Positions 11,021-62,400 of a DNA stretch of 64,000 nucleotides are shown one piece after another. The translations under genes were made by a program, and so were the position numbers. The notes under the pieces were generated by a model. That model made no database searches and was not told where the DNA came from. It saw only the letters and a list, made by a program, of their open reading frames with translations. The DNA is from Parasitella parasitica NRRL 2501 (taxonomy: Eukaryota; Fungi; Mucoromycota). The DNA lies in NCBI GenBank assembly GCA_025201805.1, contig MU619239.1, positions 289,556-353,555 of the forward strand, given 5' to 3'. Position 1 is the first letter of the stretch. Every line of letters begins with the position of its first letter.

Positions 11021-13890
11021 NTAAGGAATACACTTCATTGAAACTTGAATTAATCCATAAGGGTCACTTTGCGATACACGAATCTGACTTTTTGAAGCCA
11101 ACTCTAAATTTTCACAAAAATAAGCATTTTAAAAGGAGACCTACATTAACAGAAAAAAAAAAAGGAGTGCAGGAATATAAACAATGATCAAAACGTACCA
11201 AGAATATTTGAGAATGACTTGGCTATTATGGACGCTTCTTCTTCTGCCATCTGGAAGAATTCATTAAACACAAAAGGATTAGGCAGCTGTTTGATATGTC
11301 TGTATCGTAGGAATTTTGTTTAATTAGTTACAAATCAAGTAATCAAATAATAAATGTATGTAGATACTCCATAAATTCTTGCATATTATCTTCTTGTGGG
11401 TGCAAAAGATGATCATCAAAGCCAACATTTACGTCTGTATCTATATGAAATACATGATGAGTTTCAAATAGATTGCATCTGCTGCTTAGGCTATATACTG
11501 TACTAAAATCAATGTCGTCTCCTCCATAATCCACTGTATCATCGTTATTCATGACTTCGAACTGCTGCTTCTGCCATCTCACTGTGTCTTCTTGTCTATA
11601 CTAAACATGTGAGACCATCATGAACGAAAAAAAAAAGCGCATAATACATGTAGTTACGCTTGATTTGGTTCTACATCGCCATCAAAAACAAGTTTGTGCA
11701 GTTCAGGAGTACTGTGCACATCTATAAGATGTAATACATGTTGGTAGATCTATAAATCTATACTTTGTTACAACATAGCATCTTTTTAATACCTGAATTG
11801 GATCGAATAGAAACACCTCCACTACTGATTTGGTGGGATAAACGTCGAATGCCGTTAGCAGTAAAGTGAGAGGAGAGCGAACCGCTTGTATTGCGCCTAC
11901 GCAGGTGCTCGTATCTTCTAGATTTCTCAATCTATATTATTGCATAGCATGTTAATAAACGTGCGCGTGCAATTTATTTCCTAAAAAGTGCAATTCCTGT
12001 AATTTGAACAAAACCAAGGGAAGTTTTATGCGCCAACTAACCTGATCGTCCGCAAGTCGGTTTCTATTAAAAAATGCTAATACTTGATGCTGCTGTCCTC
12101 CTGCTCCTTGTTCAGTCAATAAATTTGTATTGTAACTAAACGTATCAAGCACAGTAGAAGGGTAGCGCAAACATTTCCTGATTATTGCCATTCTTTGCTT
12201 TTCTGTCAATTTTTGCTGTCGCTGGCTCTTCTGAATGGATGGGGTAAGTCCACGCAAAAGTCGGTCTGTAGAATAGTCCTCTGCGTAGGATAACATGGTA
12301 GTGCTTGCGACCATACGTCGCACACGTCTTGTCGTGTTAACATCAGTACGTGGTGTAACACTATCATTCACTACTCTAATTGGAAAAATAGTGCTTAAAT
12401 TACCAGTTGAAATTGAAGAAATACTCATGTTGTCTTGCTCCTCGTCTTCTTCTTGAATAAGTGATGGGGGTCCACTACGGTTATGAATAGGACCAAGACT
12501 ATAGTAGTCTGCCGTGGTAATCAAATCAGGGGCACCAAGGCGAGGAGAAGCCTGTCATAGTTTGAATATAATACAGTTTGAGTTTGTGATTTAATATTTA
12601 ATAAAATCATGTCTTGCCTGGTTTAAAGGAGAGATGTAACGAGCTCTTGCATCTGACTGTTGCTTCTGGTGGTCCAAGTGCATGTCTGCAGTATCAAGAG
12701 GAAAGTCAAACGCATTGCTCTGTGCTTGATTCTGCCTTGCCAAAGGTGCATTTAATACAGCACTGACTTCCTGCTGTTGTTGAATATCACTATTTAATAC
12801 TTATTAATGACAAGTGCATATTCAAATCAAAGATTTGCTTACAAGCCATAATCAAACATATCATAATCTTCCATTCTACCCATGTCACTCATATAGATAT
12901 GGTCAAATATATGCTGCTGCTTTATCAACGAATCAAAGGGTTGGTCTGGGTGGATCGAATCTTTTGCCATGTCGAAGGTATTGTCAGTCATTAAATTAGA
13001 TATATCTCGAGAGTTTTCAATTCTCATGATAAAAGATGAATTGTTAGCATCATTGTCCATATCATTTGAATAACTGAAATTGTAATCAAACTGTGTATAT
13101 GAAAAAGCATATTAGTTGGAAATGATAACGTAATGCCGTCTATTCATGTGATATGTACCAAAGATGAAAATGAAGGGCCTTCAGAAGACGTTTGAAATTG
13201 CAACATACTTTCAACATCAGATAGCGTGATAGCACCGGATCTATGTAGTAGTAATGAAAGACTTAGCATGCAGCCAAAAGTAATATTTTGTGCAAGGTAC
13301 TTGCGGTACAGTGGTCTTTTCCATATCAATAAAGGATGATACTGTGGGATTGAGCATGTCAGATTTCAATTTACTCCAGAGTTTAGTAGAATCATCTATA
13401 TGTGCATGTATGTAATGTAATGCGCGAGTATATTAGATCCTTAAATCGTGCTTCGTTCATATTTATGATACCATATAAAAAATAGCTTTGTTGGCGCATT
13501 ATTTTGGAAGCACCATACAATAACTGAGCTTTAGTCTTGAGTTTAAATGAGGTTTCATTTTCTAAAATCAACTGGCTGTAGTAGGCATGTACATATGGTT
13601 CAGTTGCCTGCATTATATAGCGCAACACACGCATAGTATATATATAAGTACATATATGTACACATACCACAGTTTACTGGTGTTATAAGCCTGAATTGTA
13701 TCACGCCCTATTCTCTTTTTGATATCAATTACGCCTGTTAATTGGCTTCGACTGGCTGCAAGCCTGTATGTACAATTTCTGCATGTTATTTTTCGTTACA
13801 TCTATTAAATTCAGCAAAGGATACTTTCCAAGCAATATTGAAATGTTTATTTGTTTTCAGTAATTGCTCTTCTTCAGTGACTAAAGCCAT
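11021..13890 (-). CDS. rec8: Rec8/Rad21-family cohesin kleisin (Rec8-like), ~13 exons
   Basis: The spliced N-terminus reads HFNIAWLAAS...SKLCQLILENETSFKLKTKAQLLYGASKIMRQQSYFLYDD...IDM...AITL (Rad21/Rec8 N domain). The C-terminal winged helix reads FNEFF...IAKSFSNILELASKSQIRVSQSDPYGLI. The presumed stop codon overlaps the N gap at 11021. The model needs one GA and two GC donors. Confidence 0.88.
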
Positions 13891-13937
13891 GGTGCAAAAG
13901 AGGGAAGAGAGACGAATAAATGATAAATTTAGCTACG

Positions 13938-15136
13938 CTACAATTGAATCAAAAAGTCGTCTAAATTATGTGATCTGCGTGGTATCGGCGACGAAGAAGT
14001 TGAGTTGGAAGATAGCAAGAGCGCCTGCTTGTACTTTTTCAAATCTTCAATCTCTTTGTCCAGCTCTACAGCCTTTAAATCTAGTATGTGTGTGGTTGGA
14101 ATTATCATATTATCAACTAAACTGGTCAATAATTGACCATAAACACCTGCATTGTACATTTGGGTCATGGTATTCGGTAAACTAGATGTGTTTACATTTA
14201 TAGCTGACCTCAGATCATATTTGATGCATTCGTTAGATGCTGCAAATTCTTTTTTGTACTCTTCGTACATGTGCTCGGGCAATTTCAGTAAAAGCTCTCG
14301 AATATCACTGTCTACGTCTAAGCTGGGCTCAATCAACAATGGAATATTGACTTTTTGGTTATTTTGTGCCGATTGGAAGCATGTTATTTGGACTTTTTCA
14401 GTCTGTTTAGCTGTTTAGTACGCATACACAAACTATCTGACAAAAATGAAATATGGACACATATCATCATACATACATTATCATTATGCGACTCAAAACA
14501 GGATACTATGATCCCAAAAAACTTTTCATCCATAAATTGCTGTGATAACTGTGTTCGTAAATCTAGAGTATTATACGGTAAACAACTGCATACAAGACTT
14601 GAATCAAGCTACTTACCAACATGTGACGGGAACACTGTGATATGTGGATGACTATGGTACCAGCCAATTACCATCATAGGCTTGCCTACTTTATTTCCAA
14701 ATTCCTGCAATATACAATACAGTTTAATATGCAGGCAGGGTCGAGCATTCTTCTGACAAAATTACCTCTGCCTCAAGAGCGGCCAAATGCAAATTTTCGG
14801 GTGCAATTTCAACCCTATCTTTGCGCTTATCAGATCGACTCAAGAAGGAAATGTATTTTACATGAGCTACTGATTTTGACTTTAGGTATGGATTATTGCT
14901 AGCAACAGCCTAAATACGATAGGTTATTACTTCTGCTTAAAAAATAAAATAGTTCATCTATATCTTTCCTCCCAATATCCTATCAGCATACCGATAATCT
15001 CTTCCTAATTTGACAATTTCTTGTTAGTATGTATTTTGTATTTTTACGAAAGCACTGCTTATACATTTTCTGTAGAGTAAGCGTGAGTTAGAATAAGATG
15101 ATATATGTAGGCTGGTAAAATGACTTGGTTCAACAT
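13938..15136 (-). CDS. BRCC3: BRCC36-like Lys63-specific JAMM/MPN+ deubiquitinase, 6 exons
   Basis: The spliced product contains LTHAYSTENEEIIGMLIG, RSDKRKDRVEIAPE, VIGWYHSHPHITVFPSHVDLRTQ, FFGIIVSCF and VQITCFQS, plus a C-terminal coiled coil. Intron 2 needs a GA donor. Confidence 0.93.
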
Positions 15137-15422
15137 AGTTGGTGCCAAGCAAAACAAACAAAAGAGAAAAGAGAAAAAATTTGAGTTGGCGAAATCAGGA
15201 TTAAGCATGTTAGTACTGCAATACAACCGAACCATATTACCTTAATAGATATAAACTAGATATTTTTGGGAAATAAAAAATATAAGCAAGCATATAATAG
15301 TTGCAATAAAACATTTATTATTGTTTTATAGCATGAAGCTCACTAACTACTCTATAAAAATTCTTAAAGATTGAAATTGTCATATCCGGATCCTTTTTGC
15401 CGTATTTGGCTANNNNNNNNNN

Positions 15423-15456
<34 letters not shown>

Positions 15457-16303
15457 ATAAAAAAAAAGAAGCTTCCTAAAAAGAGAAGTCGCCAAGTTTC
15501 CATATCAAAACGGTAATGGGATGATTTTACTTTACTGTCATGCTCTCGGATAAATACTTCCGTTCTTAACAAAAGTCTTATCACCTAGTATCTAATAATC
15601 ATTATTCAAATAGCTATATAACACTGAGCATCTTATTTATTGGATTTTGATCATTTCTTAATAGCTTTTTTTAATAGATGGTACGATTCCGCGGAAAAAA
15701 ATTAGAGATCTCGATCCGATCTAGTAACAAACATTCATAATAAAGTTTCGATTTCAATCTTCCATAATTACGCAATGAAGTTTTCTGCTATTTTAATACG
15801 TAAATGCGGTGAATTCTTTGAGTCCCAAAATCAATTTTGAATCTCGTGTCTTCATCATCGTTTCTTTGGAGCATTGATGCTCCATTGCCAATAAAAAAAA
15901 AAATACAAAATTATAATGTTGTTTATTACCCTAGACAATGCCAGATTGAGATAAACTCATTATTATCTGTTTATTATTACCGTTCTTTTGCGTTAAAAAA
16001 AAATCTTGAAAAGAAAAGTTCTTTTTCGAGCCTTTCATTTTATGAAACTTAGCAAAAGAATGAGCAAAGATACAAATTATATCTGTGCCTTGAACAATTT
16101 CACATTAATAAGTTTTATTGTTCTTCTAAAACTATTGCCCGCGTTTAACTTATATGTTGTTGAAACCAGTATATTCAACTAAGTTTTTTTCCAATCTTCT
16201 ATTTTTGAGCATAGATCCTTTCCCTTATAAAAAAGACTCTTTCCTTTCTATTGCTATTCCCTTGCATACTTTTTCATCTTTATATTTTTTCAACGGAATC
16301 TAT

Positions 16304-18074
16304 ATGTCAACAACTGAACAGACACCATCAAACTTTACATCAGCCGATTTGCTATACAATATACAGCAATACATGAACCTATTGACTGCTTCTAGCGCCA
16401 CATTAGCCATTTCTATGGTTTGCTCACTTTTAATTACAATAACCTACATCCATTTGCGAATCTCCCACCCTGATATAGCCAACAGAGTATCGCTAAGATG
16501 TGTTTTCATGGCAAGCCTCATGAATCTAATCAATTCGATATTCGACATTGCTATCGTGTTAATTGTCGGCGATACATACCTCTGCAGAGCTAGTGCAATA
16601 ATCTCAATGTTTACAAGAGTCATGAGTGCTGTATTTTTGGCTCTGGTGGGTGTCAATTTAGTACTTGTTTTTGTTTGTAATGTCAGTGCCTCGGCCCATC
16701 GATTGGAGTGCTTCTATTACCCAAGTGCCATCATCTATGGCTTGTTAACTATCACCATGCCTATAGTAGAGTCATCTGACGACGTTATATCGCCCGACAC
16801 TGACCTTCGATGCTATTATTACATACATTACTATCAATTCCTCGGCCACAGAAACATGCTATGGGTAAGCAGAAACACATAGAAGGTAGCCAAGTCTTTC
16901 AATTAACGCTGTTGTATGTGTAGATGTGGTTTTATGGCTTCTTATTTCTATCAATTGTCATAGCTGTCATTTGCTCAATCATTTCCCTGATAAAATTGAT
17001 GCGCGAACATCGCGCATTGATTCGAAAGTGGGTTCATATTGCCTCCATGTCTCAAACAGCCGAATCCGCCCAACCAAATGTGGAGCAGCGTGTCAAATCG
17101 CAATCAAACATATTCATGCGGGTAGTTTCACGATGTGTCTTGTATCCCCTTGGTAAAGTATACATATTTTAGTGCCATGAATATTCACACATTTAACACT
17201 CGGTAATATAGTTCCATTTATCAGCAACATTTGGGGATTTATTTTCCAAATCTATCTGATCAACCCTAAGAACGGAGTCCCCAGCTTTGCATTCTCCATT
17301 ACTGATGCTGTGTTCCGATGTCTACAAGGCTTTTTTGTATCCATTGTTTTCTTTAGCGATCCAGCAATCACGCATTATATGTACAAGCAATGGAGTCTCT
17401 GTAAAGAAAAGTACATTGATGACTTTAGCCAAATTCGTAGATACAGTGATGGTCAAGTGGAAATTGTAATTTTGGACAACGAAAAAAGCAACCACACAGA
17501 AGGATCAAAAGGCCAACCATCCTCTATCTCCATAATGCCCTTTTCTTCTCCGCGCAAGCCTTCTGTTTGCAATAAAAGCAAAACAGTTCAGCAGACACCA
17601 GCAACAGATAGCAATGAAGGGCTACAAAGCAATGTCGATTTTGAAACCAATGCTCTTAAACGTATCAACAACGATTGTGTAACTTTCAATACAGTTCCTA
17701 TGCGACGCTTAAGCGTGCCACTGTCTGTCTATACTCGAATTCACCATACTGATACTTGCATCAGCTTGTCTTCGTCTTTGCCATTACCACAGTCATCAAT
17801 TTCATCGTCTAGTATTACAGCAGTAGATTTTTACCCTCCTTCACAGTCTGGTGTTGCTGATCGTCGCTCTAATTATCGTATATTGGTGCCTTACAAGCAT
17901 CCTCGCTTAGCGTCTGCCTTTCATTGGTTCCTGGTCAAATGTGGATTTGGAAAATCAAATTTGCCTAGTTCTCCCGCTGCCTTAACATCTTTTCAGCCAA
18001 ACCAACTCTCACCTACCTCTGATTCCTCTTTGGTTGTGGATCCTCCCTCCCCTGTTCATCCTCTGACCGAATAG
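16304..18074 (+). CDS. 7-TM GPCR-like receptor (cAMP-receptor/Git3-like), 3 exons
   Basis: GT-AG introns at 16865-16923 and ~17153-17211. Seven hydrophobic helices, NRVSLR after TM1, Cys at the TM3 start and in ECL2, TM7 LQGFFVSIVFFSDP, and a long Ser-rich tail. Confidence 0.8.
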
Positions 18075-19149
18075 TAATTGATAGCATCATTTATGCCATA
18101 AGAAGCGTACCACATTATACCTATTAAGCTTCTTTAGGCAACCCTTATATACCCATTTTTTTCTAATGTCAAAACCAAACATTACTTGTTCTATTTAAAC
18201 GAGATTATATACTCCAAAAACAAACAATGAAGTCAAGTAAAGTTATTAGGATCATTACCTTCATTAAGCGTTACAAGCTATGCAAGTTAAGAATGTGCAT
18301 GTAGCTCTTAAAATCCAGATCTTCAACGAGATATCAACCGTAAGGCATAATGCGCCATATAATGTTAACGAGTATTGTAATGATGGTTTGATAGCTGTAT
18401 TCAATAGCAAACGTATCTTAATTTACATGGCAAAAAATCTGTTGTTTAAGAGTTTTCGATTTTTATTATCCAGTTAATCTTATTCAAGGAAAACAAACGC
18501 ATTGATAACGTATTATGCAATGGCAAGCATGATGACGGTGAATGAACGAGTCAACTATCCTTTTTCTTTCCATTATTATCTCTCTTTTCTTTCCTCTAGT
18601 TTGTCTCTACTTTTCCCTTGCACTTTGCTGTTTTGTAAAAAAAACCAAAAAAAAAATCTGTTATGAATTTCTTGCAAACCCTTGTTTCCGATAACAATGA
18701 TCATAAGTACCAAGCAGAGCTGATACAGACAGAATTACTGCGTATTTTAGCAACAAGCCTAACTTACGCGATTTGGGATTGGCGATTGGCATCAATTGCC
18801 ATAGATACGAACTTTTTTCTACACTATTTGCGCCAATGGATCAAGCTACAGCGGCGAAAATCTGCTGGTTTTGCACTGGATGGCTGATAGGCTATACAAG
18901 GCTATTTGGGAAAATATCCTGGAGCATTCAGCTAACAAGCAGTCCGCTAATCTCGGTCTACAGTCTGGACATATGGTGCTGTAGAAGGTGAAACAGATGC
19001 TTCCTTCAACCCCTCGCAACCCCACCAATCAACATTCATTTCCTATGCAACACCGCCGCCATAGTCTTTTTTTATAAAATGAATAACGCAACATTGCTCG
19101 TAATATGTGGAAGAAGAGAAATTATGAAATTCCTTAGTACGGCCTCCAA

Positions 19150-21410
19150 AAATGCTGGTTCCATTGATCATACTTCTGAATCAAGTGATACTCCTAATAA
19201 TATTTCGCCTGGTATGCCTGGTATCTGGAGTAACATCAGATGTAAAGAGGAGCAACCCAGATTGTTATCACTTTTGATCCATCAAATCATATCACTCGTC
19301 AAGCGATTGTCCCTAATGTCACTGCCGTTGCCATTGCTTCTGCTCCTGCTATGATAGCCTCTCTAATATTTTGAGCCTGTCCCTGCTGATCTTACACCTC
19401 CGGCAAACTATTTAACAAATGTTAATTGGGGACCTACTACCACCACCGCTGGCTGGCCGGCTCCACTTCAAACCTCACTTTTACCTCAAGTACAGGCTTC
19501 ACTGCAGCAACCACAATCATTTTTTAATCAACTCACAGATGTGCCAATTGTTTTTATACGCCTACAGCAAACCAATTCAATCAAATTGATTTTGCTTGTA
19601 TGGTAGCCCTCACGAATAGCAACAAACATCAGCATTATCAACAGCAATATAGACAATATCAGCAGTATCGATAATGTCAACGATACCAACAACAGTTTTT
19701 GCTGCACCAACAAAATGCTCAGAATTAAAATGCTCAACTGTAACAAAAATATCAGCAACAATATCAATGCCAATATAGCCCTCAACACTATTTATCACAA
19801 CAATCTCTTCATATTTTCAATAGCAGGACGAAGAAGATGATGAGCAGCAGCAGCGACAACAACAAACCAAACACCGTATAGCTTAAATGCTAGCTCCAGT
19901 ATTGTTACCAGCCAATTCATCTGGAACTGGCAGCGCTCAGGGTAATAAAAAACAGCTTATGCACGAGGCCTCTGAAGCAATATACACAAAGGCAGGATAT
20001 TTGCAGCTACGATACAGAAGAGGAATGGCTGGCTTTTGTAATCGTCTAAGAGACAAGCTGGATAACCGTTTTAGAGTGCGATACACCAAGTACATTTTTC
20101 AAGTCAATGAAGAAGTCGGCAGTGGTACTGCAGGCGCGGCGAAGGCTATTAACTACGTGAAGGGCGCTGGCAGCGACTTTGCTGGCCAGTTCGCGATGAA
20201 GGAGATATCGGTGATGCGCCAGTTGGAATTCTTCGACGTTGAATTGAACGCTTTGGATATTATGAATGAAGTCAAAGGCCTGAACCTGAAACATCCCAAC
20301 TTGATGTGATTGCGTGAAGTCTTTTTGAATCCTGGATCCCTAACGATGCAAATCATTATGCCTAAAATGGTCCTTAGTGTTGATATCATGACATGTAATG
20401 TCGGTCAACGGTACGGATGTGCTTTTAATGAATAATCCGCATGATATATTTCAAATGAGGTTAGAAGTGTATATTGAGCCTTGTTGAGTCGTATCTACTC
20501 ACTGTTACTTGTTTGTAGCTCATGAGTGGCCTGGCTTATTTAATACATGGCGATTGGTTCTTCCATGCTGATATCAAACCGGGAATTCTCCTCGTAGACC
20601 GCAATGGTAATATCAAGTTGACTGGCTTTGGGTTTCTGGGCAGAGTGGGTGTCAAAGAAGGCGAATTAAGAGGAACGTCCATTATTGGAATCCAAAAAAT
20701 ATAAAAGCCAGAGGTTAACGAGATACGAAAACTTTATGATACTTTATTTAAGATCAAAATTGCATCTACTAAGGGTGATTTATTTAGGTTACTAATTGAG
20801 AAGGCTAAATTTCAGTAACAATCTACTTGATAGAGTGCGATGTAAGGTTGTACAATAAGGGCTACACATCTTTGATCTGACAGTGCCCTAACCTTTATCC
20901 TGGTGCACAGGTCTGCGTTACAGGAATACCCTTCTTGATTTGAAACAAAACAGAGACTTTATTTTCAAGTGTACACAAGCGTATAATATCACACCATTGG
21001 ACAATCTTCAATCTTCAATTGACATACATCGCCATAATCTCCTGTCTCTAATTATAGAAGATCATTCATGGTAAGAGACAAAGAATGCTTTAAACGTATA
21101 ACATTTCATCTCTCACTCTAATAACATCATGTAGCTCCAGAATTAGCCGATCTAGACAAGCTGTGTGACGAAAAATCTGATATGTGATCTCTTGGCACTT
21201 TATTGTATGAATTGGCTGCAGGCGTTCCATTAGTGGGTGGCTACACTCCAGAAGAAATATATGAAAAAATTATCTTTTGCAGGTTCGATAAGTACTGTCC
21301 ACTAGACATCCACCTACTCTTCAAGTAACTGATATCTCTCAAAATTACATCGACCTGGTGCATTCTTTGTTGCAAAAAAATCCAGAGAGTATCGCCCTAC
21401 GCCGCCCTCG
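19150..21410 (+). pseudogene. Degenerate Ser/Thr protein kinase pseudogene with decayed Q-rich N-terminus
   Basis: Kinase motifs appear in order (EVGSGTAG, FAMK, HPNL*, HADIKPG, IKLTGFG, VAPE, KSDM*SLGTLLYELAAG) with several in-frame stops and a 444-bp insertion. Confidence 0.8.
20684..21127. mobile_element. Insertion (solo-LTR-like) inside the kinase pseudogene
   Basis: Removing it restores in-frame GTSIHVAPE. It is AT-rich, non-coding and ends in ...ctaataaca(t). It has no GT-AG boundaries and no clean TSD. Confidence 0.55.
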
Positions 21411-30466: not shown

Positions 30467-33016
30467 ATGTCTTTTACTCAAAACCCTAATTCCATAACAG
30501 ATACAGATAACGAATATATAAACCAAAGCAGCAACAGAAAGAACTCACAAACTATCCAGCATGATTTGCCTCAATTCAGAAAAGGAAAGAAGAAGCAGTG
30601 TCTCCCAGAAGTCGACCCAAAGTATGTATTACATTTTACCATTTTGACTACGCATAAAAAAATTTTCAAGTCTTGCTCAACCTTCTTTGTATCTAGTCAA
30701 CCTTGCTTTGTGCACCAACTGTCGGTAGAGCTTATCACGCATATATTTTCAAGATTAGATCCTTCCAGCTTAGCTACCGTTGCCACGGTTTGCACCTACT
30801 GGAGGCACATTGTAATGGATGATAGCTGTTGTAAGTTTGGTGTATCCAGCAAAAGCACTCTTTCTATTTTTTTTTTNNNNNNNNNNNNNNNNNNNNNNNN
30901 NNNNNNNNNNNNNNNNNNNNNNNNNNACTTATAACGCACTCTAGGGAAAAGTGCATTTGTATCTTATTTTGGTGGCCTGCCGTTCAAAAGACTCTCTGTT
31001 GACAGCTGGAAGACTGAATACATTCTGCGCACTCATTTGCTAAGGCAGGCATAACAACATTACAGTGCACATCTGTTCAAAACTAATTTCGTTTTGATTA
31101 GAAAATGGACAAAAGGTCGAGGCAATGTCATGACATTCAACCCTAAAATCGGGTCATTGGAAGCATTGCAAGTCGAGTTTGACGGCTCAGCTATGCTGGT
31201 TGCTAGCACAGAACATGGAGTGGCCGCCAAATGTAACCCAATGACTGGAAAAGTCTCTCATCGACACTTGCTTTACAGCACAAACGAGAGCATTCGACTT
31301 CAACTCACTGCTGTAAAGACGGATAAAGACCGCATTTTATGGGGATTTGACCCAGGTTTTATTACGCTTTCAATACGCACAAAATCGACTAGTCGCCTTA
31401 AAGTGTTCTCTGATTTTCATCAGGGCCCCGTGCGGATACTATCTCTGCCGCAGCATGTACAAGATGTCGTTCTGAGTGGTGCACAGGATGGCACTGTCAA
31501 AGTTTGGGATGTAACTACAACGTCTTGTGCCTGGACTCTGTTACCTGCATCTTCATCTGCTAGAGTACCGACTTGTCTTGAAGCAACATCTGATCACCGT
31601 ATCATTATTGGGTATGACGATGGTTCAATCGTCGTGTGGCATGCAAATTTGCACCATATTGCACAGCTGAATCGAAATCATCACCAGGAAGACTTTGTCG
31701 AAAAAAGAGAGCTGCTGGAAAAGAAGATGCAAGAGGAAAAAATACTGCTGGATGTCCCTATCAGCGATACACGTATTGGAGTTCAACATGCTATTTATGA
31801 TGCTAGTTCAAATATGGTTATTGTAGCCTATCAAAACCATTCAGATGTTTTGAAATTTTGCACCAACACAGGCAATTGCGTTGGTGTCTTTAGGCACAGC
31901 CATGTTCCAGGCACATCTATTACATGCATGAAATGGGATACATCTCCAGTGGCAATGACCCTTTCGTTAGAAACCGCTTTGAAACCTCGTTCTGTGAATG
32001 CGAAACGACGAGGTGGTGGAATCTCTGATCTACTACTAGGATCATCGTCTTCCTCGCCTGCAAGTAGATCCGGACAAGGCACACCATCCTCTCACAAAAC
32101 AACGCGATTGCTAGTTACTGGTGACGATTTGGGAACTATATGCTTGTGGAATGGCGACAATGTGAATCAAGATGGTACTTTGATCAAGCCAATTCGCGTT
32201 TTGACTGAACATCAGGCTGGTATAAGCGCAATATACATTGACGCTTGCAAAATTGTCACTGGCAGCGACGATGGCTGGATCTACATGTGGGATCCTCTCA
32301 CAGGCGACAACATAAACACATTAGGCAACAAAATCCCCAAGAATGCGCCTGTCGATCGTACGGATACAAACGTGATGCGGGTCAAAAATCTGTGGTGCAA
32401 CGATTATCAAGGTGTAGCCACCATCGGTCATCAAGTCAAAGCTTGGGACTTCTCTCACGGCAAGCAGTTTTTGACTAGACGTGTCGTGAAGCAAAACGGA
32501 AAACCATGCAATAATGTAGTAAGAGACAAACTACGATATGAGATTGGCCGTGAGGTGAAAGAATCCATCAGTAAATTGGAATCAGAAAAATTAGAACGAG
32601 AGCTAGCAGAGAGAGAAATCAATAAGCTCTCGCTCGGTGGACTATCAGATGAAGAAATGCTGGCCTATGCAATGATGCTTTCAGAGCAAGAGAACAGTAG
32701 GGAAGCATTGCCATCGCCGCTAAACAATATTGATTTCGTGGATGAAAATGACGAAGAATTAATGAAGGCTGTTATTGCAAGTCTAGAAGAACCAATACTT
32801 GGACAAACAAGCCTTGATACGAGTGCCAATGGCAGCGTAAGCAATAGTATAGACACGAATACTTTATCTCAATGTTCCAATAATAATTCTGGTGATGTTC
32901 ATGGTTATTGTCACTGGCCCGCAGTGGATGATTCTGCTGCAATGTCACCAATACCTCAAGAGGAAGATGACAGAGAACTGCGTTATATCCTGGAATTGAG
33001 TAAAACAGATAAATAA
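30467..33016 (+). CDS. F-box/WD40 protein with C-terminal UIM motifs (Pof10-like), 4 exons
   Basis: F-box LSVELITHIFSRLD...VCTYWRHI. WD repeats SGAQDGTVKVWD and TGSDDGWIYMWD. UIMs DEEMLAYAMMLS, DEELMKAVIASL and DRELRYILELS. Intron 3 (31045-31101) is GC-AG. Confidence 0.88.
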
Positions 33017-36113: not shown

Positions 36114-37858
36114 TTACCACAAGAATTTTGATGATACAACCATTGTGCTTGTGTCTTCGTCAGCTGGCTTTTCCAGCCTAAATTCAGTATCGTTGTTTAC
36201 CTTGGTCGCGACGTAGTTTTCATCGTATCTAAATTCATTAATGAGCGAAGCAGCATGCATTAAAGCAAATTCCCATTCTTGTGAGCGTTCGTGATCATCT
36301 GGCAAAATATACATGCGGTATTCAAAGTCAGCGTACATGCTGTTTTCCGCTGACAGGCTTTCACGAGAAAACTGCAACGCTAATCCAAGTGATCCAACAT
36401 CGACTAGTCTTTCATCGTCATCTGTTGGAGGGTGAAACACATCTAACAATGCCTTGATGGATATCTTGTAAAGAGCCTTTCTTCTCTGTGAAAATATCAA
36501 ATGTTTCAAAGTGATTGATGTGTTAGAACATCCAATAATTAAATCCTATCAATAGTTGAGAAAAAATTACCTCTTTGTACTCAAAATCGTATAGCTCAAT
36601 ATGACCAGGATATAATGTGGCCCAATAACGTGCCCATCTCTATAGAATTACAGTTAGCCTGCTACTCGAGAATATTTCTCACAATACTTGCAGGAATTAA
36701 TTTTCCTCTGGTGTAAACCGTGATAAATCCCTCATAAATGAGCTTATTATCAAGCAATGTTATGACTCTTGAACTGACAAATGTTCCATAAACGATGAGC
36801 ACTTGGTACTGATTATTGCCTTCTGCATCGTGTATTGTTATCCTTTTCAACTTTTTTTCTGATGGCCTCATTGGAATCTTGAACACTTGACTGCCCACAC
36901 AATTCTCAGGCTGGCGAAAACGGGAATTAAATACACCCAGGGTTGTTTTTGGTTGAGCATAGATGGATAATGTAGTTGTCGACGGTTTTTCGACATCTCT
37001 ATCAGTAAACATACATATTAGTTATTTCTTTTTTTTTTTGTGTGTGTGTGTATGTGTGTCGACGGTATATACTTGCAATATATAGGTTTCGTCCAAATTG
37101 GCTTGCGATCCGTTTTTACCACATTTCTGGCTTACAGCAAAAGAACCTTCGAATAACTGCTCATTTAATTCGATGGAAGACCTCAACAAACAAGCTGATG
37201 CAGAAAAATTAGTTATGGTGGTATAATGTTTGATCAGAAACTCACGTTTGGATGAATTTTGATTGATCACTTGTAACACTATCAAAAGCAGTAGATTAGA
37301 TCATGCAATGATGACAGAAAAAAAGTTGAGCTTTTACCTCGAATGTAAAATGTAGCCTTAGGTTTCATCAAATTAGATGGATGGTGATAATCACCCAGCA
37401 GTGAGCTAAATTATAGATAGATCAGTGTTTGCATCAGCCAGTATATTATTATCCACTCACGAGCTTTTGCAATGCGGTTTTCTCAATACGATTGATCGAG
37501 GATAGTCCAACAGAGGGTGCCTCAATTCTTTACCACTGTTAGTCTCTTGTGTTATCCAGTCCAGTTTTTCTTTAGGCAGTTGATCTAATGTCTCAAAAGG
37601 GCCGTTGTAGTGGACATATGGCTCACTCTGTTCTCGTTGATGTTGTTTAATATGTTGGGACAGAAGAACAGCAGGACTCACCTTCTTCTTTCTCTCTTTG
37701 GAAGAAGTCGGTACGACCTTTCTGGATGAATGATTGAAACGATTGAATAGCTTGACGTGAGATTGATGAATGAAACTTCTGAATGAAATGACTGATTCTC
37801 GAAATCCTTGCTCTTGATCTTCTAATAGTGGGTTGCGTACAGTTTTAAATGTAGACAT
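36114..37858 (-). CDS. Hypothetical protein with C2/anillin-like region and C-terminal PH domain, ~7 exons
   Basis: The spliced C-terminus reads YEGFITVY...RWARYWATL...IELYDFEY...MYILPD....QEWEFAL (PH-like). Two GC-AG introns at 36999-37076 and 36640-36691. Confidence 0.72.
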
Positions 37859-47781: not shown

Positions 47782-49725
47782 ATGACAGAAGCAAAGCAAG
47801 ATTGGAAAATCGACTTTTATAAAAACGGTGTTCCAAAGGAAGTTATTGTGATTGAAGATACACCGCCACCATCCTCAACAGGGAATGTACCAAACACGTC
47901 AAGGTATCATGTCGAACAACAGAATGTGTCTTATCTAATAGGCCCTCCAGCGGCATCTACACGCTCAAAACGCTCACGAAAAGACACCGTCCAGGATAAT
48001 AATGGTTTACCACCTCCCCCACCTCCTCAACAATCTGTTAAAAGGAGACGTAAAGATTTAAATGCTCCATTACAGCCAGGTAAGTGGGCGTGGGCGTCTT
48101 TTTTTTTTTTTTTTTTTNNNNNNNNNNTTGATCGATGTTCACTTAAAGAGCACACATAGTTTTAAGAAGACCAAATCCAAATACAGCATCTAATGCAACA
48201 ACATCAGTTGTACCAATATCTACAGTAAGTACACATTCGATATCTTTTTACTCACTGTTTCTAATCGTATCATGTACTTGCAGTCTTGTGACGATAAAGA
48301 CGGCCATTACATTATCAAGCCGAACGAATCCCTCACACCGAGATGTAAAGTGACAACACGAACATGCGAAATTACTACTAACAACAAACATAGATAAAAT
48401 GATGAGGTTACTAGGTCAAGGAACGTTTGGAAAGGTTGTAGAATGCTATGATAGAGTCAAGAGGACATTTTGTGCAATTAAAATCATAAGGGCGATACCT
48501 AAATACAGAGATGCCAGCAAAATCGAGATTAGAGTGCTGAATAGCTTGAAAGAGCATGATCCCATCAATCTTAAGTGAGTATACATCTCTGTTAATGCTT
48601 GTATCAGGTGGCTAATCCAATCCAATCCAATCCAATCCAAAAAAAAAAAAAAAAAAAAACTCAAAACAAAAAAGCAAATGCATACATCTGATTGAATGGT
48701 TTGATTACCATAATCACATTTGCATGGTATTCGAACTACTGGGTCCTTCTGTATTCGATTTTTTAAAATCAAACGAATTTCGGCCATTTCCGATTCACCA
48801 TATACAACAGTTTGCGAAACAGATACTGACAAGTGTTGCCTGTAAGTCCAGTTTGAAAATATACGCCGGGACACACCATGATTAACTCAAACTGCTTAGT
48901 TGTCCATGAATTAAAATTGATCCATACAGATTTGAAGCCTGAGAACATTCTACTAGTTGACAATTCTAGCATTGAAGCTGGAAACGTAGGTAAGCCTCAT
49001 TTCTCAGCGTTGTGAAAACTTAACATTGTCCTTAGATCTATGGTGTGGATCCAAAATCTAGGGTCCTGACTAATACGGACATACGATTGATCGATTTCGG
49101 TTCAGCGACATTTGAACAGGATTACCACTCAAGCGTGGTATCAACAAGACATTATAGAGCTCCAGAGATTATTTTGGGTATGGGCTGGTCCTATCCTTGT
49201 GATATCTGGTCCATTGGCTGTATTCTGGTAGAATTCCTAACCGGCGATGCTTTGTTCCAAACCCACGATAATCTTGAACATTTAGCGATGATGGTAGTCG
49301 TTTTAGGCAAGATACCTGCAAAATTAATCAAAACGGCAAAGTAAGTGAGATGAACTAATACAAACAAATCTTCTTTTTTTTAACCCAATACGAATATATG
49401 TGTAGCCATGATGCCCAGAAATTCTTCAAAGATGGCAAACTGAAATACCCAGATGTTGATACCACAAAACAAAGTAAAAAGTATGTCCGTGCATTGAAGT
49501 TGTTGAAGGTAAACGAAAATTCGATGCTCTTTTGTGTTTGTTGCTAATACATCTTAGCTTATCATCAACCCACATACTAATGCACGTTTTCAATTTCTGG
49601 ATCTTTTGTCGAAAATGCTGGTATACGACCCTGCAGCCAGAATCACTGCTAGAGAAGCATTAAGACACCCTTTTTTCTTGATCCCTTTTGATGACCTTGG
49701 TCAAGAAATCGATGAAGGCCGATAA
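47782..49725 (+). CDS. LAMMER/CLK dual-specificity kinase, 9 exons
   Basis: [45 protein letters not shown] and EHLAMM. Confidence 0.95.
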
Positions 49726-50449: not shown

Positions 50450-50549
50450 GTTTATTTAATGAACTGAAAAAAAAATGGCGGGGGGTGGAAGAAGAAAGAG
50501 AGAAAAGGTATGATTTTATTGTGCAAACAAATTTTTTCATTTTAATGTG

Positions 50550-53814: not shown

Positions 53815-55809
53815 ATAATAGTATAGTATATATTTTGTATATAGTGAAATAAAATTATGATTTTTGAATACAGTGACATCCTCCCATTAGCTATATGGCA
53901 GTGCACTTTTGTTTTTTATATCTCACAGCTAAATCTGGGAGGGGGGGCTCAACAATTTTAAAAGTTAAATGAGTAAAGAGGAGCTAATATGTTTTGGAAA
54001 TCTATTTACGAACGTATGGAAAGCCAGCTTCAATTGATATTGTATTGCTTATCCATGCAATGTAAACAAGGGTAAATGCTTTCCATCGTCAGCTATTTTT
54101 GCTTGTAATAAATGTTGTAATTATTATGAAGTTGAAACTTCTTTCAAGCTCAAAAAGTGATTTGTAATTAAATTGTACATTAATGGTAGCAATTCCTGAT
54201 CGGGTAAACTGTAAAACCATCAAGCAAAGGGTTTCTTCTCTAATAAAATGGCATCATCATTTTGACATGTGTAGTAAGATATGCCAGGAACGCTTTAAAG
54301 TCCAAAGAAACGAGATGTAATAAAGTACAATAGGAGGGATGTTAGAAATGTTGTTGCCATATTAAGTATACACATCTATGATTACAATGCTTATAGATGG
54401 TCGTAATCTTCTTATAACCTCATTATGAAGCAAACCTACGAAGTTATTCAATGTCCAAGAATTTTTTCAGTCTAGCAACGATTTTTCCTGGGATATTATG
54501 GTTTAAATTTTGTTGATGATAAATGACAGACTATGATGTCTTAATAAGAAAGAGTCGATTATTATTGATTCGATGGTCCCGATTTTGTGATTAAAATAGA
54601 TGACATGAGACATTTATGGTTGCACAGTTAAAAAAAAGCCAAATAAACTATTGTCCTTCATTGATAGTACCTGCATTTACAATGTTGTAAGTAACTCATC
54701 TTTGAAAATTATCTGTGAATTTGCAACCTGGTTCTCGTATCAGGTTGTCATGAAGCTCCTAATTTATATAATAGTCTACAAACTGCATAGATACTTTGTG
54801 TAGAATGTCACCTTTTTGTGATTACTTGACACATAATACCACACAGATCAAGGATTTAATTTCATGACAAAACTGTGTTTCAGTTTGTAAATTGCTACAT
54901 CGTCATGCTAAACAATCTGGGTTCGGTGCACATGTTTTCCCGATACTACAGGTTTTTAATATTAATATGCCTAATTTTGGATTATAAGATATCAATTGAT
55001 GCTGAAAAATCATGATTACAAATATTTGTAATAATCATTTACAGCTATTATTTATGCTACGGAAACGTAAAAATGGAGCAACGTTTACTAATATGTACCA
55101 ATTGTACTGAAAACCCTTCAACAGCCTATTTTTTTTTTTTGCTTTTATCCAGTAACAGTATCATCAAAAATAGCAATGATGTTTCAATTCTTTTTTGTCA
55201 GATTATTTTTGGCAATTCTTATTTGGGCAAATAGGTCTGTCAGACTAAATCGTACATTTTCAAACTACAGTATCTTGCTTGACATGTTAATTCACCGCAT
55301 CATTATGTGGACATAATAGTATGTCATTGTTGCCTTGAAAGATTAACATAGGCATCAGCTGAGCTCATAATAATGATCCTTATGGAAAAACATTTGTCAA
55401 GTTTGGGAATGGATGTTCATATACACGGAATATCGGGGTACATGTAAAGCACAAATCTTCTGCTGTGTCATCTGGAATCACCAAGATATGTACTTGTACG
55501 CTCAATAAAATTAGTGGCATTTAGTAGCTCATGCTTTTTTTTTTCAGAAACATTAAGAAGAAAAGTGAGTGAAGCAACAATAGCAAGAAATAGTGCCATG
55601 GAAACTAGTAGAAATGCCGCGTAAAACAGAGTAAATTTTACTTGATTTAGCAGAATAATATGAATTTTTATAAATAGCCTTTGGCATCCGAATGCGGTGA
55701 CACACGGCGTTGATTTATCCTGGATTTTGGCTGTATATAACCCTATTATTTTTCCAAAGATCAGTGCTGGAAGTCTCTCATTTCTTTTGTCTCTTATTTC
55801 AAAATTATA

Positions 55810-58372
55810 ATGGCAAAAGCTACCCAAGAATTAAAATATAAACGCCTCAAGGTTGGGCATGCTTGCTTTGTTTGTCGCAGTAAGAAAATCAAGGTGTGTG
55901 TGATACAGTTTAATTTTACATCAACCCACCTTTAACGAATTTAACAATTATAAACGATGCTATCTAGTGCGATGGATTGAGACCATGTATGCAGGTTAGA
56001 GATGATAAAATTATTAGCCGAGTATTTTAAATTGACTTTATTTATATTTCTGCGATTCCATCTTAACATTCATTAGTGCAAAGGTAAAGATGTTACGCTG
56101 AAAATCTATATATAAAATGCTAACATCTTTGATAGCACGCGGACGAGATTGTATATCGTCTAATTCAGAAACACAGGCTGAAAACTTGAACTACAGCAGT
56201 GCAGGCAGCGATAACCAGGATGAAGCAGATAGCAACCACAGCATCATTGATTCTGACGATGATTCCATTTTATTCTCTCGCTCAAGGACAAATATTGACG
56301 ACAATCCATGTGTGCCTAAATCCAGTGATACCTGGACTAGTAATGCAGCCAAACAAACAACAGCAACTTACTGCAAATCACAAGAGCTGCCTTTAGGTGA
56401 TTTTCCAACATTTGGTAGCTTTGTGCGCTGGAGAGTCGAACCATCTTTGCCATCTAGATATTCTACTGATATTGAAATGCCATCAGGTGAAATACAAATG
56501 CATTTAATCAACCTTTTTTTTGAAACTGGATACAAGGTGTCTCCCATCATACCAAAACGACACTTTTACGAGCAACTGCGCACCAAAGGACCTCTGATAA
56601 CGCCTCTTTTACTGAATGCCATCTATTGTATAGCCAGCAGCGGTTGCACGCTGAAAGATGTGCCCAAGTCAATCGTATTCTTCAACCGTGCCAAGAAATT
56701 ATTGGATGATTTTCTGGATGTGCCAAGAGTTAGCACAGTAGCAGCTCTCTGCCTTCTATCCTTATATGAGCCTGTTCCTACCAAGTCTAAATCCGCGGTA
56801 GATCAGCATTGTCGCTCGTGGATGTACAGTGGCATGGCTTTCCGCATGTGTCTTGAGCTCGGTTTGAACATGGAGACGCTTTACTCACGCGATAACATGG
56901 CATTGGAATGCATCGAGCTTCGCAGAAGAATCTTTTGGTCATGTTATTGTTTAGATAAGCTACAAAGCGCTGAATGGGAAAGACTGTGGGCGATTCCTGC
57001 CTCTTTGGCGAGAACAGCATTGCCTCAAATACTGCCTCAAGATGATGATTCCGAGCGCTGGGTTGTGCAAACATTTCAGCAAAAAATTAAGCTTGCTCTG
57101 CTAGGCGAAGAAGGCCTGCAGATTCGTGCCTGTATTACAATTCGTGATGATGTTTACAACGGGAGATTCCATGAGCAGCTTGACCAGTACCGTGCCAAAT
57201 TGCTGCATTGGAGCTGCAATCTACCTTGCCCAACAGTTTGGGGCATTCGCCCTTGTGAAACCGTTGAAGATGTGATGAAAGAGCCAAGAAAATCTGCAGA
57301 GATAGGCTATTTCCTTTCGTTGTACTACTTTATGCTTAGTGACACATTATTCTGTCTTCCTGATAACGCAAAGACATCTGTCCAACGTCGTATCTATGCT
57401 GCCCAACTTACCAGATGCGTTGAAAGTGCCTGCGACAAGCCTTTACTTGTAGTCCGCTATGAATTTCTCGCTCATGCTCTCATCGCTGCCATTCGTGTCC
57501 ATTCAAGATATCTGAATAATCAGGATTCGGTTGTAGCTGGTCAATCTTTGCATCTTTTCAATCAGTGTATTGATCTACTGCGAAAGTTACAAACATTTGC
57601 TATTATTCCAGAATGCACAGCTGTTTTGCAAAAGATCTCTGCTATTCACGAACACTCACGATTGCACACTGTTCGCTCTGAGGCCCCACTGTCCAAAGCT
57701 GCAGCTATTCTTGATTCCACACCTCATCAGTTTGGCAATAGGGTTCCGTTTCAGCAAATGGACACTAATGGTGATATAGCTCAATTTTCGTCAGAACAGC
57801 AGCAACGGCACGCACAAAATCTTGCTGACCCATATCAAACAGATATACCTCACAATAGCTCATCCTTTGATTCCCAAAATATGGAAAAAACTCTTATTAA
57901 TTCTCCTTTCAACAACATAACAGCATTTGGCACAAGCATTGGTGTTGATTTCGGCGATCGGAGGCATTTATGGGAAGTCGCAGTAGACGCATCGCAAAAC
58001 TGTGAATTCGAATCTACCCCATCTACACCTGAAGGTAGTATAAACCAGACAGCGTTTCCAACATCTAGCACCTCTGAATGGAGTCCCTGCAATACTAGCG
58101 ACTTTATATGGCCTGATCCCATTGTATCACAAACGTCATTCCATCCCCAACCACCACACTACAGCATGACATCGTCTTCTCATCAACTACCGCTGTCAAA
58201 CTCAATGGCAACATATCCTCAGCAACAGCAAAGTACATACATACAACCACCTCCGCAGCAAATCGTAAATGTTAGTGCCCACATCACACCCACACTAAAC
58301 TCGAACTTGTGCTACTCAAGCCTGGCAGATTCTGTGATAAATGTTCCTCAGCACGCGTATTACCCCTGTTGA
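55810..58372 (+). CDS. Zn(II)2Cys6 transcription factor with fungal TF middle-homology domain, 4 exons
   Basis: ACFVCRSKKIK|CDGLRPCMQ|CK|ARGRDC assembled from micro-exons 55968-55994 and 56077-56083. MHR motifs WMYSGMAFRMCLELGLN and ELRRRIFWSCY.LD. Confidence 0.92.
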
Positions 58373-59483
58373 TTTTTTTTACTCGAAGTATATAGAATCA
58401 CTTGTACTATAGTTTTTTATTACTTTATGTATATAACATTAAAAAACACAGATTGAAACAACTTATCTTACACTTGGGGACTCTAACGCCTGCAAAAGCT
58501 AGACATGACATTGGTGCGCCTTACATGGCAATAACAATGACATTAAGCCATTTGAACTAGCTTGCTATCACAGATGAAAAGAATAAGATTGTTGTTGGAT
58601 AAAATGCGAATCAGCTCAAGAACATGCAACGATAGACACCATCGCTCTTCTAAGCTATGATCACATGCATGTGTACGTGATGCTTGTTATCTACGGTAAT
58701 GACTTTTGTAAGAGTATATGATGACTAGGTGATAGATCCGTTTGCTGTGAAGCTTGCATTTGGAATGCAGTATATGCGCGTCATATGCCAATAAAGTCCA
58801 AGTAGGATGTCTTGTTGTGATGCGCGATTTTTAGATCATAATGACCAGGCAACAGTACACTACTGAATTATTTTGTAATGATGGTTAGATGTACCATCAA
58901 GAATGTACAATAAAAATAGCGTTTTAAGGGGCACATTGGCAGCTTGGCAAGACAGACCTCTGTGCTATTTTACTATGTATACTGATTAGAGTAGCTTTTA
59001 CACATTTTTGTACATGGCATTTCCAAATAAATATTGCTGTACAATTGATGCGTAGATCAAACATTCAGGCAAGGCTTATAAAATGTACATTCTGTTGAAC
59101 GTGAATAAAATCGTCAGGGAGATCGATGCGTTGTACACCGTGACAGAAAATGTGTTGTTTGTTGAGCACCCAATTTCTCTGCTGATCACCAAGTTGATGG
59201 TGATACAAAAAAAAAAGGATAAAGAAAGCAAGCAGATCTACGGCAAAATAACAAATACAAACATTTATTATCCTTTAGCAGCTGGCCATTCGGGCAAAAC
59301 GTTAAATTGGCAGTATTTTGTCGAATCCAAATTTAACATGCTTTGATGTTTTCAGCATTCCTGCACGAATATGTATCGTAATGCNNNNNNNNNNNNNNNN
59401 NNNNNNNNNNNNNNNNNNNNNNNNNTGCAACATGTAGATGATTTCAAACCTTTTCTTTTCTTCTTATCTTTTCCTTTAAAAAA

Positions 59484-62400
59484 ATGAAAATTTCAAGCCA
59501 TTTAGACAAGAAGACAGCAAAGGCAAACAATGCAAAGACATTTACACAGCAGCAACCGCCATCTGCTAAAAAGCCAAAAGTTTCCGTTATAAAGTTGTTT
59601 CGATTTGCCACACCAGCAGAGATAGTCGTAATCTTTATTTCTGCCATGTTATCAGCAATGTCAGGGTGTGTGCCGCCACTGTCTATCCTCATTTATGGAT
59701 CTTATATATCTACAATAAGCAGAGATGCCAAGGGCAACCAGCAAGTCCTAGAGAGTGCTGCACCAACCATCCGATTCATGCTGATAATTGGCACAGCAGC
59801 AATTGTTACATCATACATGTCGTCTTGTTTGTGGATACGAGTTGGAGAGCGGCAGATACGCCGCATTAGAGCCATGTACTTGCACTCAATCTTAAATCAA
59901 GACATGGCGTGGTTCGACAGGGCTAAAGACGACTCCCTATTGACTAGACTGCAAGCCGATACACAACTGATCCAAGAGGGTATCTCTGAAAAGTGTGGTT
60001 TATGCATATCATCTGCTTTTCAGTTTACTGCCGGATTTGCAGTCAGCGTCTACAAAGGTATATTTACATAAACAGTCGATTATGTCATGATTCACTCAAT
60101 GCGCATCATTAAAATGGCAACAGGCTACCAAATGGCATTAACCATGTTTGCCGTATGTCCGCTTTTGCTTGCCATATCCTTGACAATGATTATTTTGGTC
60201 AAGAAATACGTTGTCCAAAACCAGAGATCGTATGCACAAGCTGGTGCAGTGGCCGAGCAAGCATTGCAATCTATTCGTACAGTTCACACCTTTTCACTGC
60301 AGGAGAGGTTTCTGAAACGCTTTCAAGAAAAGCTCAAGGGAGCTGAAAAATATGGAGTCAAAAGAGTCTTTGTAAGCGGTGTTGGCATTGCTTTGTTCAC
60401 GTTCTGCTTCTATAGTTCTTTGGGATTGGCTCTTTGGTATGGGTCCCAGCTAGTCTTGGAAGGAAAGTCGACAGCTTCAGCAGTATTCGTTGTGTATCTC
60501 GGAATGATCATGGCCAGTATATCCCTGTCTCAAACGTCTGTCAATCTAAGTTCGATTCTAAATGCATGTGCAATTTCGTACAAAGTGTTTAAAGTCATTG
60601 ATACAATGCCCAGCATAAACTGTGACGACTGCAGTGGCGAGACACCCTCTCGCATTGATGGTGCTATTGAATTCAAGCATGCCAAATTCGCTTATGCCTC
60701 AAGGCCCACTGTGTCTGTGCTCGATGATATTTCACTTGAGATCGTTCCGGGAATGACTGTTGCATGCGTAGGATCGTCAGGCTCTGGGAAATCAACCATC
60801 ATTCAGCTTTTACAGCGATTTTATGACCCAACTGAGGGCCAAATTACGCTGGACGGGCATGATTTGAAAAAGCTAAATGTCAAATGGCTTCGCCAAAGCA
60901 TCGGTATTGTCGGCCAGCAGCCAGTGTTATTCAACATGACGATCCGAGAGAACATTCAGATGGGCAGTTCTGTTCCTGTGTCAGACAGAGATATCATTGC
61001 AGCAGCCAAAGAGGCAAACTGTCACAAATTTATCAAGCAGCTACCTCAGGGCTACAATACTTTGATCGGGGAGCAGGGAAATATGCTCTCAGGTGGCCAA
61101 CGACAGAGAATTGCAATTGCCAGGGCAATCATAAAGAACCCGAGGATTTTATTGTTGGATGAGGCAAGCTGATAGAATATATGTATATGTACTGTGCATT
61201 TTGATCTAATCTAATTCGCTAGGCAACGTCGGCATTAGACACTCGATCAGAAAAACTGGTTCAAAATGCGCTAGATAAAGCATCAGCAACTCGAACCACT
61301 ATCATCGTTGCACACCGCTTATCTACTATCACCAAAGCAGACAAGATTGTTGTCATAGACCAAGGAAGAATAGTGGAAACAGGCACACACCAGCAGTTGA
61401 TATCTCAAAACGGAATTTACGCTGATCTAGTAGCCAAACAGACCATTAATACTGACAGCGACGACCAAGATGCGTCAACCATAGACGAAGAAATCGATCG
61501 TGAAGAATTAACGATGAAACAGAAAATAGAAGATGAATCACATCTTCTTAGTGCTCTAACCAAGGTGAATACGATGGACTCGACGAGTGGATTTACCGTC
61601 AAGGACAGCATACACAACGAAAAAAGTCTTGCAGGAGACGCTTCTGTCGATAATGACAACAGAAAATCCAAGAAGAAATTTTCAAGCACTTGGAGTGTTG
61701 TCAAAAGAATGCGACAAGAGCGAAAACTGATTGCCTTGGGCGTTGTGGGAGCCTTGATCCAGGGCTCTATCTTCCCTCTGTACGGATATTCTTTCTCTTG
61801 CGTTATTGGCATACTATCTGACCCAGAATACCAATCAGCACCACCTCTACAAGGAACAAACCTATATGCATTTGTATTTTTCATCATTGGAGTTTCATCA
61901 TTTCTTGGCGCCGGATCAAAGAGTATTTGCTTTGGGCTCAGTGGCGAGTATTTCACGCATCGACTTCGTGGCCAAATGTTCAGCGCTTACATGAAGCAAG
62001 ATATCGAATTCTTTGATAGGAAAGAGAATAATACGGGTGTACTAACAACCAACCTAGCCATCAATGCACGAAGCGTCAGCGACATGGTGTCTAAAGTCTG
62101 GGGAGATGTCATCAGCTTGTTCGCTACCTTGGTAACCGGTCTCGTCATAGCGTTTAAGCATAGCTGGGCCCTCACGTTGATAACTATGGGTATGATGCCC
62201 TTCATTGCCCTTTCAAACGCATTTGATTTATATTTGCAGCGAAGCTTCAACGACAAGACAATGCGTGATAATGTCCAAAGCAGTCAAGTGGCAGGCGAAG
62301 CTATCCGGGAAGTGCGCACAGTAGCTGCTCTTGGCAAACAAGATTATTTCGAAGAACAGTATGCCAAAGCGACGGTATACTCCTACCAACTAGCAAAGAA

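Follow-up and report, generated by a model that had tools for sequence, protein, structure and literature searches.

We analyzed a 64,000-nucleotide (nt) stretch of the Parasitella parasitica NRRL 2501 genome (contig MU619239.1 of assembly GCA_025201805.1, positions 289,556 to 353,555; hereafter the window) in which eight introns begin with GC or GA instead of GT. An earlier reading of the letters alone, the original prediction, had listed these eight non-GT donors, and all eight are supported by our analysis, four by RNA joints and four by protein or domain continuity. They are probably ordinary U2-type introns with a changed second base (+2) that is tolerated by unmodified U1 and U6 machinery. 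On present evidence they do not reveal a new recognition system. The most notable item is a GA-AG intron, conserved across three genera, in a Rec8/Rad21-like kleisin gene where two GC donors have been kept as well. Positions below are counted from the first base of the window, and a slash marks the exon-intron or codon junction. The assembly, G000 in our collection, comprises 32.8 Mb in 450 contigs, and the window is G000:C3:289556-353555.

Splicing at four sites was read from RNA. The only public run with the stretch, X1, holds spliced contigs with poly(A) or poly(T) loose ends and is therefore a transcript assembly; such contigs cannot reveal splicing efficiency, intron retention or minor isoforms. 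Aligning them to positions 9500-15400 gave 17 joints, and among the 15 listed, 11 are GT..AG on the minus strand. Three of the four non-GT joints lie in the kleisin gene. Intron 1 (13764-13828, minus strand, 65 nt) reads TTG/GAAAGT...CAG and splits the Trp codon of ...IAW/LAAS. Its joint could be drawn as GG..CA, GA..AG or AA..GG, and only GA..AG both begins with G and ends in AG. A second kleisin intron (13241-13304, minus strand, 64 nt) reads ACC/GCAAGT...TAG. Its joint, from 13240 to 13305, reads CT..GC on the plus strand with zero ambiguity, which is GC-AG at 13304. The third (12552-12617, minus strand, 66 nt) reads CAG/GCAAGA...CAG, and its joint (12549 to 12616) has a 5-nt ambiguity that allows CA..GA, AG..AC, GG..CA, GC..AG, CA..GG or AA..GC. 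Only GC..AG has the AG end. The remaining RNA-supported site opens intron 2 of a gene for a BRCC36-like JAMM deubiquitinase (14910-14968, minus strand, 59 nt; GAG/GAAAGA...TAG). Here the options are AG..TT, GG..TA, GA..AG and AA..GG, and again GA..AG alone combines a +1 G with an AG end. The joint ambiguity at the two GA sites is 2-3 nt. These four joints thus show real splicing of GC-AG introns at two sites and of GA-AG introns at two more.

Sites outside the RNA stretch were judged by protein or domain continuity, for which exons were searched singly and junction peptides were compared by script. An F-box/WD40 gene contains a GC-AG intron at 31045-31101 (plus strand, 57 nt; AAG/GCAGGC...TAG), and the P. 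parasitica protein P0121 is continuous over this junction (...YILRTHLLR/KWTKGRGNVMTF; shorter form THLLR/KWTKGRG). Two more lie in a conserved gene at about 36114-37858 whose exons gave no Pfam match. The first (36999-37076, minus strand, 78 nt) reads ATT/GCAAGT...TAG and the second (36640-36691, minus strand, 52 nt) reads CCT/GCAAGT...TAG. Searching the whole library with the intervening exon found full-length homologues, with matches that end at query residue 107-108. P0293 and other homologues read ...DETYIL/DVDRP and ...TRGKLIP/RWARYWA with no extra residues. Two alternative GT donors were rejected. Use of GTGAGA, in frame and 9 nt downstream of 36691, would insert the residues ASI, which the homologues lack; the GT located 4 nt inside the donor at 37076 is out of frame. 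The last GC-AG intron (61164-61222, plus strand, 59 nt; GAG/GCAAGC...TAG) interrupts an ABCB-type transporter in its Walker B/D-loop sequence, LLLDE/ATSALD. The upstream exon ends in ...ILLLDE, exactly where the Pfam ABC_tran match ends (positions 1-134 of 137), and reading through the donor meets an in-frame stop at once (GCAAGC TGA). A coding-potential scan also recovered this donor. Thus, the junction used has GC-AG termini by RNA at 13304 and 12617 and by protein or domain continuity at 31045, 36691, 37076 and 61164. The lengths of 52-78 nt, the YAG acceptors, and the sequences and coordinates given in the original prediction were confirmed at all eight sites.

None of the eight donors is touched by an assembly gap. 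The window has four gaps, three of which fall at long A or T runs (15413-15422, 30877-30926 and 48118-48127) and resemble homopolymer read-through failures, not missing sequence of any length. The gap at 30877-30926 is within a GT intron upstream of 31045. The exons that flank it are in frame according to P0121, and the intron, once the Ns are removed, is collinear with its M. circinelloides counterpart. The gap at 48118 is intronic and comes after a CAG/GTAAGT donor, and those at 15413 and 59385 are outside coding sequence. The NDUFS1 exon of the window shows 96% identity to Mucor plumbeus, and an exon of the F-box/WD40 gene shows 96% identity to P0121; an exact look-up of 10 open reading frames (ORFs) of the window in the protein collection returned no match.

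We compared the donors with those of related Mucorales. Syntenic loci were available from M. plumbeus (L025; GCA_016758945.1), Benjaminiella poitrasii (L029), and M. circinelloides (L030, with the near-identical assembly L031). Further loci came from a Joint Genome Institute (JGI) Mucor-like contig (L027), a Mucoraceae assembly (L033) and Rhizopus microsporus (L058). Three of the sites are inherited, four are lineage-specific with GT in relatives, and 61164 has no compared relative. The kleisin GA donor at 13828 is the most widely shared: TG/GAAAGT occurs in all five assemblies (the window, M. plumbeus, L030, L031 and Benjaminiella), which span three genera, and the intron interiors diverge. 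At the same codon position R. microsporus has TG/GTATGG. Both M. plumbeus and M. circinelloides share the GC donor at 13304, where Benjaminiella and Rhizopus instead have GT, and the same two Mucor species keep CAG/GCAAGA at 12617.

The other four compared donors differ from those of relatives. The BRCC36-like donor at 14968 is GA in the window only; M. plumbeus, M. circinelloides, Benjaminiella and the JGI contig have GAG/GTA... instead. The donors at 31045, 37076 and 36691 are GC in the window and GT in the one relative compared for each. For 31045 this is M. circinelloides, with CAG/GTAATT at the same intron position; for the other two it is L033, with ATT/GTAAGT and CCA/GTAGGT, respectively, at identical positions. 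Judged from these alignments, the four sites are T-to-C or T-to-A changes at +2 that are specific to the lineage. The converse case was found in M. circinelloides, where BRCC36 intron 3 (L030, ~17200) opens with GAG/GCAAGT. The window has GTAATT there, and M. plumbeus and Benjaminiella also have GT. By the same kind of comparison, this is an independent gain of a non-GT donor in a relative.

The original prediction held that the spliceosome of this lineage tolerates G-N donors and named U1 and U6 among the possible seats of the change. The first part stands for GC and GA, which are spliced at the four RNA-supported sites, and the second does not, because both small nuclear RNAs (snRNAs) are canonical. 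The Rfam U1 model found two genes in the assembly (on C60 and C91), both with a canonical start (ATACTTACCTG / TCATACTTACCTGGGTCGTG / ATACTTACCTGG). A 20-mer search that allowed up to three mismatches across all 32.8 Mb detected no variant U1 copy beyond these two genes. The ACAGAGA box of U6 is intact (GATACAGAGAAGATTAGC); a second, sub-threshold U6 match was rejected because it is not a U6. A U11 gene is also present.

GT donors are loose in this genome, and RNA-confirmed examples include GTACAT, GTATCA, GTATAA and GTAATT. Measured against CAG/G.AAGT, the eight non-GT donors match at 4.75 of 7 positions, compared with 3.74 of 7 for 50 GT donors called by species comparison (Mann-Whitney p=0.005). 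On the intron side only, the figures are 3.4 of 4 for non-GT and 2.6 of 4 for GT donors (p=0.02). AAG occupies +3 to +5 in five of the six GC donors, and there is no GG donor among the non-GT donors of the window. The better match of the non-GT donors elsewhere argues for a continuing contribution of the +2 position to recognition. A stronger consensus in the rest of the donor is a known general pattern of GC-AG introns.

We propose a model in which the T at donor +2 changed to C or A in ordinary introns of the major (U2-type) spliceosome, and in which unmodified U1 and U6 would still recognize the changed donors. The remaining donor (+1 G, AAG at +3 to +5, and often +6 T and -1 G) would pair almost perfectly with the 5' end of U1, and this pairing may compensate for the single mismatch at U1 A7. 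Recognition seems to require few U1 base pairs, given how degenerate the GT donors of this genome are, so that a well-matched G-C or G-A donor would pass. The variants would originate as point substitutions in pre-existing GT introns, and they could last long, as the kleisin GA donor appears to predate the Mucor-Benjaminiella split. The cluster in the window would then comprise three inherited sites in one gene plus four lineage-specific substitutions.

How common such donors are elsewhere was estimated by calling introns between pairs of species. Starting from collinear protein-level matches, we took the donor/acceptor pair whose junction peptide aligned best without gaps in both species; donors could equally be GT, GC, GA or GG, and GT was taken in ties. 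On the RNA-verified stretch this procedure recovered most known joints in at least one comparison, with a few errors in poorly conserved parts (e.g., a false call at 11996). Four regions outside the window (on C1, C62, C118 and C90) provided 25 confident introns: 23 GT, one GG call and one GC candidate. The lone GG call was rejected as a 1-nt shift of a GT site, leaving at most one GC in 25 and no true GG. The GC candidate is intron 1 of ARPC2 (p34-Arc) at C62:165410, with AGA/GCAGAT in P. parasitica and AGA/GTAAGG in M. bainieri. An in-frame GTAAAT 18 nt downstream is a possible alternative donor that would add six residues. In the relatives used for these comparisons, a tally of about 37 donors in genes outside the kleisin/BRCC36 pair contained no non-GT donor. 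A GC-AG intron was also found in Exo84 (C1:82358, L008:2358; 51 nt, CAG/GCAAGTAT), across which the Pfam Exo84_C match is continuous (95-155 before and 157-195 after). Separately, two copies of the candidate donor AAG/GCAAGTGG face in opposite directions at C1:239904 (plus strand) and C1:243971 (minus strand; L023/L024), roughly 4 kb from each other, with C2H2 zinc-finger-like flanks. The pair may represent a duplicated or mobile gene with a candidate GC-AG intron.

Two other counting approaches were also used. Joining ORFs across a dinucleotide followed by AAG/AAGT-type cores, with and without excluding GT alternatives, gave a 5-10% background for any dinucleotide, so no rate can be obtained from these counts. 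Short exons score just 0.5-5 bits under a fourth-order coding model, too little for it to solve ORF pairs. Used as a filter in the window, the same model found four GC donors against about 0.1 expected from controls. Several GC candidates were rejected. For C1:166375 (GCAGGT, in Med13) there is a good GT alternative, AAG/GTTAGC; for C62:166501 the actual donor is CAG/GTAAAA; and for 51255, 39000 and 27839 in the window the upstream frames look like junk. The share outside the window agrees with the published counts for other Mucorales given below. We infer that the genome-wide non-GT rate is probably a few percent, with the 10% share in the window most plausibly a local peak above it.

Several observations weigh against reading all eight sites as ordinary, individually tolerated substitutions. 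The window has eight non-GT donors among about 76 introns (the count made in the original prediction, used here as the denominator and not recounted in full), including two GA-AG introns only 1.1 kb apart, which is well above an expectation of 1-3%. GC-AG introns typically make up about 1% of introns in fungi and other eukaryotes. Counts based on expressed sequence tags gave GC-AG rates of 1.3% in Rhizopus oryzae (71, with 5520 GT-AG introns) and 3.2% in Phycomyces (446, with 13504 GT-AG introns; PMC2846911), and pathogenic fungi range from 0.02 to 2.97% (PMC6176087). By our own Poisson arithmetic, the probability of at least six GC donors among 76 introns is about 0.04 at a rate of 3.2% and about 6e-4 at 1.3%. 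The value of 0.04 makes the excess unremarkable for one window picked among several hundred scanned. The neighboring kleisin and BRCC36-like genes together have 15 orthologous introns, and for 5 of them at least one species shows a non-GT donor. That five assemblies from three genera retain the GA donor suggests good tolerance of GA in the clade. The independent sample is also small: one in 25 carries a 95% interval of about 0.1-20%. A coding-potential scan of 200 kb elsewhere found six GC donors against about three expected, a result that fits any rate from 0 to about 10% or more.

These points could be explained if a spliceosomal protein such as Prp8 or U1C made the Mucoraceae accept G-N donors much more readily than other fungi do, so that such donors accumulate almost neutrally across the genome. 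We regard this explanation as doubtful. It would account for the local share, the two RNA-confirmed GA-AG introns, the conservation of one of them over three genera, the rapid GT/GC/GA turnover between relatives in two genes, and a GC-AG rate that is already high in Phycomyces. The canonical U1 and U6, the lack of GG donors, and the strong consensus that surrounds every non-GT donor, a sign that +2 still counts, all speak against it. So do the roughly 37 donors in relatives and the ceiling of one in 25 outside the window. In its boldest form, U at +2 would be truly relaxed in the Mucoraceae (Mucor, Parasitella and Benjaminiella), so that GC donors would be several-fold more frequent than is usual in fungi and GA donors could be used stably. 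A change in a spliceosomal protein, not in U1 or U6, would be responsible, and the kleisin GA-AG intron would be the oldest visible trace. We consider that form unlikely. Nothing in U1 or U6 points to a special or altered recognition system.

The concentration of non-GT donors in the kleisin gene would be explained if selection kept its three weak donors as a splicing switch, for example one that is less efficient outside the sexual cycle. Three non-GT donors among about 12 introns are conserved in Mucor species although the intron interiors have diverged, and conservation of the GA donor extends to Benjaminiella. Such a switch accounts for at most three of the eight sites, however, and the form assembled in X1, the sole RNA run, is fully spliced; we think it improbable. 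An artefact, whether from base errors in the assembly, misdrawn introns, or a GU regenerated in the RNA by C-to-U editing, is very improbable. For the five donors that are lineage-specific or uncompared (14968, 31045, 36691, 37076 and 61164) the base call comes from the assembly, and the gaps show that the assembly had trouble at homopolymer runs. Yet at three sites independent assemblies from other species show the same GC or GA, the RNA junctions are compatible with these boundaries alone, five independent errors that all strike donor +2 are implausible, and editing cannot convert GA to GU. Tolerated +2 substitutions in U2-type introns thus remain our preferred explanation.

The kleisin gene occupies 11040-13890 on the minus strand, and its three non-GT donors are among about 12 detected introns (10 RNA joints and two comparison calls). 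Pfam Rad21_Rec8_N matches its orthologues from M. circinelloides, Rhizopus and Phycomyces. The BRCC36-like gene (13940-15136, minus strand) has six exons, one GA donor, and Pfam BRCC36_C on the last exon; all five of its introns were seen as RNA joints. Only about 47 nt separate the BRCC36-like stop from the kleisin ATG, and one 2513-nt transcript contig (11793-14908, minus strand) spans both genes. The two transcripts either overlap or undergo read-through. NDUFS1, a C2H2 zinc-finger gene and the Rec8/Rad21-like kleisin gene follow one another in an order that is retained from Phycomyces and Rhizopus to Mucor (window 4300-15200 and loci L025, L029, L058 and L059), and BRCC36 is next to the kleisin gene only in the Mucor/Benjaminiella group. 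The Phycomyces locus stops short of the kleisin 5' end, and synteny of the region is not retained in Backusella. In M. plumbeus, the NCBI kleisin model (L025:3096-5320) has 490 residues and begins downstream of the GA and GC introns; the models of M. circinelloides, Benjaminiella and Rhizopus have about 550-600 residues. The shorter M. plumbeus model is apparently a truncation that arose because GA and GC donors were not available to the predictor. Elsewhere in the M. plumbeus locus, about 350 bp (L025:13835-14190) match more than 30 places in the P. parasitica assembly at 67-71% identity, and the segment is a dispersed repeat family common to both species.

Gene predictors restricted to GT, or to GT plus GC, will break genes in these fungi. 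Annotation of Mucorales should permit GC and GA donors with a strong AAGT context. The conserved GA-AG intron, together with the lineage-specific conversions of GT to GA or GC at unchanged junctions, offers a natural series on U1 pairing versus a +2 mismatch.

We compared the introns of the window to known classes of unusual introns. Mucorales retain U12-type (minor) introns. The U11 gene noted above and an exact match to the U12-type donor motif (GTATCCTTT) 4 nt inside the 13828 intron (13816-13824, minus strand) resemble that system. We rejected a U12-type reading of this intron: the RNA junction is not at the GT of GTATCCTTT, and the motif is absent in M. plumbeus, M. circinelloides and Benjaminiella. 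No TCCTTAAC-type branch site was seen in the intron sequences, and the window donors are G[CA]AAG[TAC] or GCAGGC, which is U2-type and not the U12-type /RTATCCTT.

The six GC-AG introns share with known U2-type GC-AG introns their GC..AG ends, ordinary lengths and acceptors, above-average consensus elsewhere in the donor, and a canonical U1. They differ from the published Mucorales rates in frequency, since six in about 76 introns of one 64-kb window is several-fold higher. In our literature search we found no report of GC or GA donor frequencies for Mucor or Parasitella. Unlike a typical GC-AG set, three of the six (31045, 36691 and 37076) are recent T-to-C changes relative to a sister species.

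GA-AG introns are described from Eurytemora affinis as well as Oikopleura dioica, where they make up 3.2% of supported splice-site combinations in one species, and the same paper cites human FGFR GA-AG introns (PMC7072748). The text of its supplement, in the part available to us, has no Mucorales entry. For the human FGFR introns a canonical GT six bases upstream was invoked, which the window cases lack. For E. affinis a C8U variant of U1 was proposed, whereas the P. parasitica assembly has no U1 isoform with an altered 5' end. The GA-AG introns of the window resemble those of E. affinis and O. dioica in their GA..AG ends, RNA support and A at +3. They differ in number, with only two cases in the window, and in history, as one of the two is shared by five assemblies that represent three fungal genera.

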